From the NCBI GenBank assembly GCA_900088475.1, contig FLMG01003442.1:1-43714 (forward strand): a stretch of 43,714 nt of DNA. Reading direction: 5' to 3'. Origin of the DNA: Hyphochytrium catenoides. Its lineage: Eukaryota > Protista > Hyphochytriomycota. The notes under the pieces were generated by a model. The model saw nothing but the letters and a program-made list of their open reading frames with translations, was not told where the DNA came from and made no database searches. The position numbers and the translations under genes were made by a program. Of this stretch, positions 31,214-35,045 are shown one piece after another (within the stretch, counting starts at the first letter, position 1; every line of letters begins with the position of its first letter).

Positions 31214-34200
31214 ATGAGCACCGGAAAACAAGAGATGCCTTCTCTCATTGACAAGCTGCGACTTTGGGCATCGACTAAGGGAGATGAGGTGGGGACCGAG
31301 GTATACGTGATACATCTGGCTCGTGCTCAATACTTTTCCTCCGTGCAGACCGTTTATACCTTTGTGGATGAGAAGGGCCAGCCCACGGAGAGCTTAAGTT
31401 ATCAGGTGCTGCCTCGGGATGGACAGCTCACTGTTAATGCTCACTAACTCTCCCTTTATGGAGACAGGAGCTGAAGGACCAGGCGGAAGTGTTAGCAGCA
31501 CTGTTAATTGGCAACAAGGCAGAAGGGTAAGAAGGCCAGCACCAGCTGAGAGAGAAAGCCGTGCGTCCTTTCGTCCACCTTCTAAATAACTGTTCTCTTC
31601 AGACTTCAGCTCCAACCAGGCGACCGAGTCATGCTCGTCTATACGCCGTCACTGCACTTTGTCGTCGCTTTTTATGCGTGTCTCATTAGCGGAGTCATCG
31701 CCGTCCCTGTGTTTCCACCAGGTTAGCGCAACTCTCGTCCTCTATTTCTTTCAACACCTCATCGTACTGACGGATCACCTTGTCTGCCTAGACCCTCGAA
31801 GACTAGGGAAAGACAACAACATGTTTGTCTCTATCTATAATAGCAGTGGGGCAAAGATAGCCCTTACTAACTCATATCCTTCCTCCAAACCATCCCCCGT
31901 GTTGGCCACTCTGACCTCTAGTTTTAGGGCCTCTGTCTTCCATGGCCTTATGCATGCGCTCTAAACGTCTTTACGCCTTCACTCTCTCTTTCTCTGTACA
32001 TGCCCTCGAAACTTCCTTACGCCTTCACTATCTCTTTATCTACCTCCTGTCACGTCGTGGACCGTCATTCTCAAGCCCTTGATCACACATTCTACTACTA
32101 TATCTCGGCATTACGCTCTGGATGAATGCCTTTCAGTAGCCTTAACTCTTCCATTGCACAGCGTACAATCATATGAAGCATATAACGGCGTTGAAGGAGA
32201 AGTTTACCGTCTCCGGAAAGGTATCGTGGCCAGACCTGCAATGGGTCGTTACTGATGAGCTACTAGCTCGGCGGCGAAAATCCAGTACGCGGTGGCCGTC
32301 TTTGGCTTCCCCTCCTCTTGAGGATGTTGCCTTCCTTCAATACACCTCAGGATCCACATCAGACCCAAAGGTGAGCCGTAATCAGCTTCACCTAAAGGCT
32401 TGCTTCTTACAGAACTCTATCTTAACATCCTCTTCTCCCTTGGCTGCAATTGGTAGGGAGTGATGATAACCCACAAAAATCTGGCACATAATCTATCGAT
32501 TATCATCAAGGCATTGGAAGCCGACGAGACTACTGTCGTCGTTTCGTGGTTGCCCCAATTCCATGACATGGGGCTCATCGGCTCCTGTCTCGGTTCCTGC
32601 TATTGCGGTGGAAGAGCGATCTTCATGTCGCCTCTCACGTTTATCAGGAATCCGCCTCTGTGGATGCAATTGAGTAGCAGATATCAGTATGTCTATGCAG
32701 CTCTGCACCTTGCTCTTGCCTCACTCTTTTCATCTTTGTCTGCGGTTGTTTACACTGCTCAAACCAGCGGCTGAGACTCTACTTCATAGTGCTACGCATC
32801 TACAAGGCCCGAACTTCGCTTTCGCCCTCACAGCTAGGAAGTTCAATGCGCTCCCCATTGCAAGTCGAGGGGAACTCAATTTATCCAGTATTCGGCACAT
32901 CATTAACGGAGCGGAACCTGTAACCTTTCAGTCTATTGATCTCTTTCAATCAACGTTTAGAGAGTACGGCTTGCGAGAAAATGTAAGTAATGCTGAATGA
33001 CAAGTCATCAACTTGCTCGTCGCCGGGAATGGTGAGAGCTGTAGAAGGGGCAGCCATAAATGGATACCAAGGCAAGAGAGACCTAGCACGCCACACGAGC
33101 GCACCATAGGGGATACAAGGCATTAAGATGAAACGCTATCCTAACTTCGGCTCCTTTCACATGTTGCAGATCGTCTTTCCTACTTATGGCTTGGCGGAGC
33201 ACACCGTCTTTGTATGCGACAAAGGCTCTCAACGACTTGCTGTGGACAAACTACTTTTGGAAACAGAAGGTTTGCTGCTATTGTGGGTGCGGGGACTTCG
33301 GTGACCGGCACTATTCTCATCGTCGGTGCTGCAGGAAAAGTTATGCCAGCAGAGGGATCCGCCGCCAAGGAGCTTCTGGGATGCGGACGACCCAAGGATC
33401 ACGGTGTGATTTGCAAGGTTGTTGATCCAGAAGCAAGGATAGAGTTAGAGGAGGGCAGGTATTCTATTCACCTCGCATGGTTCCACCTCAGATTCGTCAT
33501 TAACATTCAGCTCATCAGAGTGGGCGAGATATGGCTGAATAGTGAGTCCAAGGCCAAGGGTTACTGGAGCAACCCGGAGCTAACTGCGAGAGATTTTAAG
33601 GCTACACTTAACGGCTCAGAGAACAAAGAAGGTGTGGCTTTACTCTCAAGCACATCATAAACAGTCTATCAAGGCATGTCATGGCCACAAGCCTAACAAA
33701 CCTACATACACCAAGGCTATCTTCGGACTGGCGATCTGGGCTTTCTTCATGGTGGTGAACTTTTTATCTGTGGTCGGATAAAGGACCTCATCATAATAAG
33801 GGGCAGGAACCACTACCCACAGGTTTGGCCGACCCACTGCTGCATTGTTTTTGATAAGATCCTTAGCATTCTCGTTGGGATCTCTAAATTTCATCTACTT
33901 ATTGACAATGCTCTGTCTTCATTAGGATATAGAAAGGACTATAGAGTCATTTGAGGATGTGCGTCCAGGCTGCTCAGCAGCTGTGTCGTCAACGGAGCAA
34001 GGAGGTTCTGAAGAGCTGAAGCTGATCTGCGAGGCACGAAAGACTCCTACAAGGCGCAAGCCATCTGGTATCTGACAAAATCGTGCCCCATTTCTTTCTC
34101 TTCAGGTTAAGGATGGCACGAAGCCACAGTTTGATACACTTGGGAGTAGAATTCGAGCTCTGGTTGCCAAAGAGCATGGCATCTCTCCAGTCCTTGTCGT

Positions 34201-35045
34201 CTTTCTAAAGCCACACACTATACCTAAGACGTCGAGTGGCAAAATTTCCCGGAGACGATGTCTGGCTGCCTTACAGGTATTTCGGAACTTTGGAGCGATC
34301 ACCTTGAAAGGCTTACAAGCTCTCCTCTACTTAATCTAGAGTAACAAGTTAGATGTCGTCTGGCGGTGTCAGTTCACCCAGGAAATGGCGGCAGGCAATC
34401 TTAACGACGAGCAAGGCTCACCCACACGAGGTTCGACCCAAGAAGCTCCGCAAAGCAGCTAACTTATCCTGCTTACCTACTTGTGGTGGTCCTTAAAAAG
34501 ATCTCTGGCTTGCGCATCTCGCTCTTCAAGTCACTGGGCCCTGGCAGGCCTTATATTGGAGCGCATGATATAAACGTACGCGTTCTACTCATTAGGCCCA
34601 TCCGAAGAAGGTGAACGAGACCCCAAAGCCGTCCTGCAAACCCTCAAGACAGAGGTGGCGGCTCTATTGGGCTGTGAAGCAGAAGAAGTAGACAGTCGGA
34701 CACCTTTGATTGCGGTAAGGATAAAGCGCCTCACCATTTCAACGATTAATCTGAAACTGATCTGGTGGCGTCAATCCTTTGTTACACCGACAGATTGGCC
34801 TGGATTCTATGGCTATAGCGCAAGTTCGAGGTATTCTTCTTCACAGATACGGCGTCACAGTGGAGGATTCCTTGCTTTTTGAAGAGAGAACCACTATCAG
34901 AACATTGCAGCGTCTGATTTGTGGCGAGGAAGGGGTTAGGAGAGATGAAATGGGCAGCTCAGAGGATGGTGACGAGCACTATGTAGAAACTCCAAACACT
35001 CTTAGTAACGAGTGCCCATGCTTCGTCTGCTGCGTCATTATGTAA
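31214..35045 (+). CDS. Fatty acyl-AMP ligase (FAAL) fused to a C-terminal acyl carrier protein domain, ending in a CaaX motif; many introns
   Basis: Spliced motifs PGDRVMLVY...[65 protein letters not shown] plus a FAAL-type insertion, YLRTGDLGF...[20 protein letters not shown] and [14 protein letters not shown] motif [11 protein letters not shown]-terminus [10 protein letters not shown]. Confidence 0.9.
31874..32159 (+). other. U12-type (minor spliceosome) AT-AC intron
   Basis: 5' end ATATCCTTCC, branch site CCTTAAC at 32140-32146, 3' end GCAC. Splicing restores the frame ACT AAC TC|A GCG TAC AAT CAT ATG (ALTNSAYNHMK). Confidence 0.85.
34034..34105 (+). other. Probable GC-AG intron in the FAAL gene
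   Basis: TGC GAG|gcacga...ttctcttcag|GTT AAG GAT gives LICEVKDG. Read-through hits TGA, and the nearby GT donor (gtatct) gives the wrong phase. Confidence 0.65.

Follow-up and report, generated by a model that had tools for sequence, protein, structure and literature searches.

A fatty acyl-AMP ligase-acyl carrier protein gene of Hyphochytrium catenoides with a CaaX-terminated cysteine tail, and its stramenopile family with fused membrane acyltransferases

The window analysed here is a stretch of 43,714 nucleotides of Hyphochytrium catenoides DNA (assembly GCA_900088475.1, contig FLMG01003442.1, positions 1 to 43,714 of the forward strand). Its plus strand carries a gene for a fatty acyl-AMP ligase (FAAL) that is joined to an acyl carrier protein (ACP) and to a cysteine-rich tail ending in a CaaX box (Table 1). 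The region 31214-35045 is without a long open reading frame (ORF), and the coding pieces are short and spread over all three frames. Splice junctions were picked one by one, using the reading frame, splice signals and agreement with homologs. The translated 17-exon model is a single open frame of 736 codons with no internal stops. This joined model was analysed by local scripts, and database searches used single exons or homolog proteins. The closest full-length homologs were 41-46% identical to the model, and the best identity in the FAAL region was 51%. A first-pass annotation, made from the letters of the DNA alone, had described an adenylation domain, an ACP with a GLDS serine, an acidic linker and a CVIM ending before the stop. 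All of these were borne out by the sequence and by matches to PF00501 and PF00550. Of the gene ends that it had placed, the ATG at 31214 and the stop at 35043-35045 stand. The last exon begins at 34794, not at 34795, as its acceptor AG lies at 34792-34793 in phase 0.

Segments at 32146-32771 matched the AMP-binding family PF00501 in Pfam. The adenylation motifs were intact in the model, with A3 at residues 192-202, A5 (YGLAE) at 348-352, A7 (YLRTGDLG) at 456-463, A8 at 474-493 and A10 at 566-575. When exons 7 and 8 were searched against the PDB, only FAAL structures were matched at E <= 1e-3, namely 3KXW, 7R7E, FadD32, FadD23, FadD28 and 3PBK. The closest named homolog, P0105 from Phytophthora, matched FAALs with E values of 1e-103 to 1e-50, compared with about 1e-13 for FadD13 and other acyl-CoA (coenzyme A) ligases. 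In the window protein, 38 residues separate YGLAE from GCGRP at the place of the FAAL-specific insertion. The segment after YGLAE in P0105 aligned with the FAAL 7R7E without deletion, and the insertion was kept. By affinity, the adenylation domain is that of a FAAL rather than of a CoA ligase. The closest solved structures are bacterial FAALs (3KXW of Legionella, the polyketide synthase (PKS) FAAL domain 7R7E and FadD32), which share the adenylation fold and motifs as well as the insertion after YGLAE. Exon 17 alone matched the PP-binding family PF00550 with 25.2 bits at a cut-off of 20.8, and the DS motif of the ACP was present in 118 of 120 diatom orthologs. Hydrophobicity windows gave no transmembrane-like segment in tail-bearing proteins outside the buried core of the adenylation domain, and one hydrophobic window lay inside the ACP. 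The protein is most likely cytosolic, because it lacks both an N-terminal extension and a transmembrane-like segment outside this core.

At its 3' end, the gene reads AAC GAG, then TGC CCA TGC TTC GTC TGC TGC for the cysteine cluster and finally GTC ATT ATG TAA. The ending CVIM has the make-up of a CaaX box, with a cysteine at -4, aliphatic residues at a1 and a2, an X compatible with farnesyltransferase (FTase) and a position at the true C-terminus. CVIM is the farnesylation box of K-Ras4B, identical to that of the window protein, and C733 is a predicted prenylation site. Upstream cysteines at -1, -4 and -6 from the CaaX cysteine are similar to the second signal of H-Ras and N-Ras, and CPCFVCC is similar to the hydrophobic cysteine clusters of SNAP-25. 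Unlike in Ras, SNAP-25 and CSP, the tail is carried by a metabolic enzyme with a carrier arm and not by a GTPase or SNARE, and an acidic linker replaces the polybasic hypervariable region. Of 46 stramenopiles in a published survey, nearly all are reported to have the CaaX protease domain architecture (PMC8035641).

With exon 7 as query, 12133 relatives were retrieved in an exhaustive HMMER search, and tails were read in the best 150. Among these 150, dozens of proteins with 700-1100 amino acids finished in Cys-rich tails such as NCPCFLLCCGK, NCPCFVCWCC and CPCCFCCY, in some cases with a polybasic run after the cluster. Canonical CC-CaaX-type endings were found in other relatives (CCVVM, GCVVM, CCSVM, CCAMM, CCVVS and KCIIS). 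Named members of the family were stramenopiles and comprised Phytophthora, Chrysoparadoxa, the diatoms Helicotheca and Thalassiosira, Triparma and MMETSP transcriptomes. Their annotation was only hypothetical or "Carrier domain-containing protein". In an ACP-plus-tail alignment, the window tail was in register with the family tails; C732 was invariant and C733 was kept in at least 70% of the rows. The tail of the window gene is, from this conservation in homologs, more than a product of chance. As the first-pass annotation had assumed, the gene does not appear to be spliced past its stop. Transcript-derived homologs flagged 'type:complete' finish right after the motif, and a convergent ORF ends 161 nucleotides downstream, so that no further domains are expected after the stop.

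A word search seeded with a diatom member yielded 120 distinct diatom orthologs, 119 of them complete. All 119 ended in C-a1-a2-X and had a conserved LGCPPGV before the CaaX. Position a2 was held by I in 97 and by V in 22 of these proteins, and position X by Q (49), L (34), M (28), S (7) or I (1). Outside the diatoms, CaaX endings were CSVM in Triparma, CVVS in P0118 and CVVM in P0088. A search seeded with Phytophthora gave about 30 peronosporalean oomycete orthologs, all ending in a polybasic (K/R)xxKL(F/L/V)CGCIAC. In the same search, saprolegnialean orthologs ended in CCGCIAIR and thraustochytrid-type members in a polybasic run followed by FGCFAICGC. Conservation of a terminal CaaX, which the first-pass annotation had put forward as a check, held throughout the complete diatom orthologs, whereas saprolegnialean and many other members keep the Cys cluster only. 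Judged by these endings, a true CaaX is specific to certain lineages, namely diatoms, Triparma, arguably peronosporalean oomycetes (CIAC) and the window gene. The element conserved family-wide is, on the same reading, the Cys cluster, which often stands beside basic residues. A metagenome scan with exon 7 gave 80 loci. Four of these were examined and one, L003, belonged to the eukaryotic family; the remaining loci share about 42-50% identity with exon 7 and seem to be FAALs of soil bacteria.

In the family tree, the window protein was placed inside a eukaryotic, mostly stramenopile clade of 49 rows with an SH-aLRT (Shimodaira-Hasegawa-like approximate likelihood ratio test) support of 97. Of the 49 rows, 33 ended in a Cys or CaaX tail, 11 carried a hydrophobic hairpin together with a DGAT2, DGAT2-like or unnamed C-terminal domain, and five were truncated. 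Among the bacterial or multidomain rows outside this clade, none of 22 had a Cys or CaaX tail. Four FAAL-ACP-DGAT2 fusions, P0020, P0023, P0034 and P0036, matched PF03982 with E values down to 3e-39 and were 41-46% identical to the window model. Six further fusions carried a precomputed PF03982 tag (P0366, P0374, P0377, P0382, P0388 and P0394). The DGAT2 fusions showed a hydrophobic hairpin of 40-50 residues between ACP and DGAT2 and (E/G)PHG-type variants of the DGAT2 motif. Two of them, L001:92-3475 and L002:64-3213 (P0023 and P0020), were single ORFs on transcript-like contigs, in the size range of 1049-1127 amino acids, and one MMETSP transcript encoding a DGAT2 fusion was flagged complete. 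The DGAT2-fusion clade (SH-aLRT 95) was nested among tail-bearing proteins.

A second type of fusion was FAAL-ACP-MBOAT. L003:16-4122, an intronless and AT-rich gene on a metagenome contig, encodes 1368 amino acids with a match to PF03062 (E 2.4e-16), and the same architecture was found in P0058 with 1328 amino acids. The two formed a pair with an SH-aLRT of 100, which was sister to the whole eukaryotic clade with an SH-aLRT of 83. Another clade, comprising P0085, P0095, P0090, P0148 and P0149 with 907-988 amino acids, had a hydrophobic hairpin after the ACP and an extra domain of about 170-200 amino acids. This extra domain had no significant Pfam match and may be a very divergent acyltransferase. 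Nearly every complete family member thus has a membrane device after the ACP. This device is a predicted lipidation signal or else an acyltransferase that is integral to the membrane; the two occurred together in no member examined.

Other domain combinations were also recorded. P0343, an oomycete-like FAAL-ACP record of 1156 amino acids, had a terminal ABC-transporter transmembrane domain (PF00664); it may represent one more fusion to a membrane domain, or its gene model may have been merged from two genes. In P0133, P0122 and P0111, which branched just outside the eukaryotic clade, FAAL-ACP was combined with hexapeptide-repeat acyltransferase, amine-oxidase/FAD and catalase-like domains.

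The window protein is probably a FAAL-ACP whose tail is prenylated and S-acylated and whose acyl-ACP is offered, at a membrane, to a DGAT2- or MBOAT-type O-acyltransferase. The first-pass annotation had already proposed a membrane-anchored module with a partner in trans. Conservation of the tail supports that interpretation, and the partner, which had been left unnamed, can be narrowed to the DGAT2 or MBOAT type because close homologs are fused in cis to such acyltransferases. The biochemical steps below are inferred, and so are the lipids of the anchor, the membrane that it targets and the partner. The FAAL domain would adenylate a free fatty acid to acyl-AMP and move the acyl group, without CoA, to the phosphopantetheine thiol on Ser658 of the ACP in cis. 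Cys733 of CVIM would be farnesylated, VIM cut off and the new C-terminus methylated at the endoplasmic reticulum (ER). Cys727, Cys729 and Cys732 would then be S-acylated, giving a Ras-like anchor with two signals. The acidic linker of 31 residues may act as a leash on which the ACP swings between the FAAL active site and the bilayer. The acyl-ACP would be used in trans by a membrane-embedded O-acyltransferase, most likely of the DGAT2 or MBOAT type, and the product would flow into neutral-lipid or other membrane-lipid acylation. A broader proposal, which we hold possible but doubtful, is that stramenopiles, and H. catenoides, run a CoA-independent acylation at the cytosolic face of the ER or lipid droplets, in which a lipid-anchored FAAL-ACP feeds DGAT2 or MBOAT enzymes with acyl-ACP. 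If such a branch exists, the same problem would have been solved in two ways, once by the stand-alone, tail-bearing proteins and once by the natural fusions. These DGAT2-family enzymes would be the first to take a carrier-protein thioester instead of acyl-CoA, and prenylation would be new for an acyl carrier protein.

Several points weigh against this interpretation. Known DGAT2 enzymes use acyl-CoA, and the use of acyl-ACP would be new. A search for stand-alone relatives of the fused DGAT2 domain gave only 12 matches, which were mostly fragments, plus a coccidian DGAT2 with 38% identity, and no specific trans partner was found among the 12. Many members have Cys clusters other than CaaX (CCY, CCGK, CGC and CCGCIAIR), and prenylation is not a family-wide rule. 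No close ortholog of the window protein (>51% identity) was found in any search, including the metagenome scan, and the CVIM ending could be compared with that of relatives of at most 51% identity. The nearest relatives are only 41-51% identical, and the tree gave the window protein no firm neighbours within the eukaryotic clade. The window exon alone matched the DIP2-like C-terminal domain PF23024 with 14.6 bits, below the cut-off of 27. All splicing of the 17-exon model was placed by homology, and introns 13 (GC-AG) and 15 (linker) by homology only.

Some of these points bear on an alternative in which the tail is only a string of S-acylated cysteines, similar to SNAP-25 or CSP, and CVIM is incidental and unprenylated; anchoring and enzymology would be unchanged. 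The invariant element across the family is indeed the Cys cluster and not the CaaX, and many endings are CCY, CCGK, CWCC, CGC or CCGCIAIR, or a cluster followed by a polybasic run. CVIM, however, is a textbook FTase substrate, and diatoms keep the cysteine at -4, I or V at a2 and an allowed X in all 119 complete orthologs, as selection for prenylation would predict. In addition, DHHC action on a soluble protein usually needs a prior membrane signal such as a prenyl group or a basic patch, whereas the linker of the window protein is acidic. This alternative is considered unlikely; an S-acylation-only tail is plausible for many family members, and less so for the CVIM ending and the diatom clade. 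A different role for the same cysteines, either as an acyl relay, which would take its acyl group from the adjacent acyl-S-phosphopantetheine by self-acylation, or as a metal or redox site, appears very unlikely. A flexible linker does place the cluster within about 70 residues of the ACP serine, and the exchange of a thioester from phosphopantetheine to cysteine should be chemically easy. Against this, the cysteines are separated by hydrophobic residues (F, V, L), with no His or Asp ligands, the fusions have a transmembrane hairpin in place of the cluster, which suggests a role in anchoring, and the canonical CaaX of diatoms would be left unexplained.

The delivery of acyl-ACP to a lipid acyltransferase must also be weighed against a conventional function, in which the protein is a loading module for a PKS or nonribosomal peptide synthetase (NRPS) encoded elsewhere in the genome and does not supply a glycerolipid or neutral-lipid acyltransferase. 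All characterised FAALs load carrier proteins of the PKS/NRPS type (PMC12820801, PMC8460268), the best PDB match of the family, 7R7E, is a PKS FAAL domain, and eukaryotic genes need not cluster. Nevertheless, no PKS or NRPS homology was found within the 43.7-kb window. With 150 homologs as tblastn queries, among them multidomain PKS/NRPS proteins as well as DGAT2 fusions, all 799 high-scoring segment pairs fell inside the gene, and no ketosynthase (KS), acyltransferase (AT), condensation (C), DGAT or MBOAT homology was detected elsewhere in the window, which agrees with the absence of KS, AT and condensation domains in the first-pass annotation. The cis partners in the eukaryotic clade were DGAT2 or DGAT2-like domains and the unnamed C-terminal domain, with MBOAT in the sister pair, and none was KS or C. 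The family is also single-copy-like and kept across oomycetes and diatoms, as a gene of primary metabolism would be. A function in PKS/NRPS loading is thus regarded as rather improbable. The remaining explanation is an artefact of the gene model or a pseudogene, with the ACP and tail belonging to another transcript or the gene broken at 34034-34105. The splicing rests on homology, and one junction needs a GC-AG intron with the weak donor GCACGA. On the other hand, one open frame runs across 17 exons, all catalytic motifs are intact, a GT-AG alternative (34068-34157) is also in frame, and the order FAAL-ACP-tail is identical in transcript-derived homologs. An artefact is therefore hardly credible.

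Carrier-protein-dependent acylation at membranes has precedents in Aas of E. coli, an acyl-ACP synthetase with a PlsC-type acyltransferase, and in the transfer from the carrier DltC to the MBOAT protein DltB. The FAAL-ACP-MBOAT and FAAL-ACP-DGAT2 fusions share their logic of adenylating, carrying and delivering. The window polypeptide differs in that it has no acyltransferase, and membrane proximity would be given by its lipid tail. A FAAL fused to its ACP is a known arrangement, as in nocuolin A biosynthesis (PMC12820801). Compared with bacterial FAAL-ACP loaders, the window gene is eukaryotic and intron-rich, has no PKS/NRPS neighbour and carries a conserved, putative lipidation tail. FAAL-LPAT/AGPAT-like fusions, with a FAAL beside a lysophospholipid acyltransferase domain, are reported from Actinomycetota and Pseudomonadota (PMC12820801). 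These fusions are bacterial, their acyltransferase is of the PlsC type and not a DGAT2 or MBOAT, and a lipid anchor is not described for them. Among eukaryotes, DIP2 of fungi and animals is a FAAL-derived protein tied to the conversion of diacylglycerol to triacylglycerol (PMC9342972). In full-length homologs of the FAAL-ACP family, the C-terminal subdomain scored 22-48 bits against the DIP2-like model PF23024, whose cut-off is 27. DIP2 has a DMAP1-binding domain and two FAAL-like domains without ACP or tail, whereas the window family has one FAAL, one ACP and a tail or acyltransferase. A 2026 survey listed FAALs in oomycetes and in diatoms, which are reported to have the most of any eukaryote (2.9 per genome) with no function assigned, and the word 'membrane' is absent from it (PMC12820801). 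In the open-access papers and bioRxiv preprints searched, no paper linking a FAAL with CaaX, prenylation or S-acylation was found, nor any description of FAAL-ACP-DGAT2 or FAAL-ACP-MBOAT fusions, nor relevant literature on CaaX in diatoms or Phytophthora. The eLife papers of 2021, 2022 and 2025 on DIP2 and FAALs made no mention of stramenopile FAAL-ACP, DGAT or MBOAT fusions. What appears to be new is a FAAL-ACP family of eukaryotes that is marked by a conserved tail, probably a lipid anchor; the FAAL-ACP fusion itself is known in bacteria.

The structure of the gene was worked out junction by junction (Table 1). A shortest-path model with a minimum of introns, restricted to GT-AG introns, was biologically wrong and was replaced by homolog-guided junctions. 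Removal of intron 5 closes the frame with ...TNS before and AYNH after the junction. This intron has the hallmarks of a textbook U12-type AT-AC intron and as such implies a minor spliceosome in the organism. Intron 13 is probably a GC-AG intron. With it, the model reads ...ICE before and VKDG... after the junction, matching the homolog P0003 (...AEVRDS..., AEVRDSKSSGLDKLAEKLRREIVAEHGI) with equal spacing to EHGI. No in-frame GT-AG option keeps both conserved flanks. A GT-AG intron at 34068-34157 is in frame at the expense of the conserved segment, and a 38-nucleotide GT-AG intron at 34068-34105 is out of frame and reaches a stop. GC-AG was adopted because the GT-AG options fail at the conserved flanks and the spacing of P0003 is matched. 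For the linker intron 15 (34431-34595), the donor at 34431 is one among several in-frame choices.

Table 1. Position of the FAAL-ACP gene, its exons, selected introns and tail elements, and of long neighbouring ORFs in the window
Feature	Position	Strand	Remarks
Whole gene, ATG to TAA	31214..35045	+	17 exons, 736 codons, FAAL-ACP with putative lipidation tail
Exon 1, start codon, without signal or transit peptide	31214..31288	+	model residue 10-11 aligns with homolog residue 5-7
Exon 2	31349..31405	+	
Exon 3	31468..31526	+	
Exon 4	31603..31721	+	
Exon 5	31792..31873	+	
Intron 5, AT-AC, candidate U12-type, 286 nt	31874..32159	+	ATATCCTT donor, CCTTAAC branch site 14 nt before 3' end
Exon 6, start of A3 motif	32160..32370	+	PF00501 match
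Exon 7, conserved FAAL core, used as search query	32457..32686	+	PF00501 44.5 bits; PDB matches FAALs only
Exon 8	32790..32982	+	PDB matches FadD32 and other FAALs only
Exon 9, A5 YGLAE and start of FAAL-specific insertion segment	33170..33269	+	
Exon 10	33335..33458	+	
Exon 11	33519..33631	+	
Exon 12, A7 YLRTGDLG and start of A8	33716..33822	+	
Exon 13	33926..34033	+	
Intron 13, proposed GC-AG, 72 nt, weak donor GCACGA	34034..34105	+	
Exon 14, A10 motif with catalytic Lys572 (34223-34252)	34106..34276	+	weak PF23024 DIP2-like C-domain match
Exon 15, inter-domain linker, 3' boundary uncertain	34340..34430	+	5' junction by homology to ...AALLNGELQEVFR
Exon 16, first half of ACP	34596..34714	+	
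Exon 17, ACP serine, ACP helices, acidic linker, Cys cluster, CaaX, stop	34794..35045	+	
Ser658 codon of GLDSM, phosphopantetheine attachment serine	34806..34808	+	exon encodes I-G-L-D-S-M
Acidic flexible linker, 31 aa, 10 D/E and 2 K/R	34920..35012	+	between ACP and Cys cluster
Cys cluster CPCFVCC (C727, C729, C732, C733)	35013..35033	+	candidate S-acylation sites plus CaaX cysteine
CaaX box C733-V-I-M	35031..35042	+	directly before stop
TAA stop	35043..35045	+	
Long uninterrupted neighbour ORF	7481-12515	-	1092+593 codons
Long uninterrupted neighbour ORF	25913-29413	+	1166 codons
Long uninterrupted neighbour ORF	39275-41887	-	870 codons

The neighbourhood of the gene comprised large ORFs for Npa1/URB1, a cyclic-nucleotide-binding (cNMP-gated) K channel, a TPR-SET protein and an MFS fragment. 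The convergent ORF at 35207-37006 on the minus strand has 599 codons, is rich in Q, M and P and had no Pfam match. As its stop and that of the FAAL-ACP gene are 161 nucleotides apart, the 3' untranslated regions of the two should be very short or overlapping. Intron density was very uneven in the window, with 16 introns in the 3.8 kb of the FAAL-ACP gene compared with the long uninterrupted ORFs of its neighbours.

FAALs are known from bacteria, where they avoid CoA and act as gatekeepers of polyketide and lipopeptide synthesis; their roles in eukaryotes are little defined beyond DIP2. The main FAAL-ACP family of stramenopiles bears a strongly selected tail that is probably a membrane anchor. 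Its tail-less relatives with DGAT2 or MBOAT domains suggest a testable CoA-independent route of fatty acids into storage or membrane lipids. The groups in question are important for carbon in the ocean (diatoms), for oil biotechnology and as a cause of plant disease (Phytophthora and downy mildews). In addition, the few prenylated proteins known outside the GTPases would be joined by a metabolic enzyme with a carrier protein.

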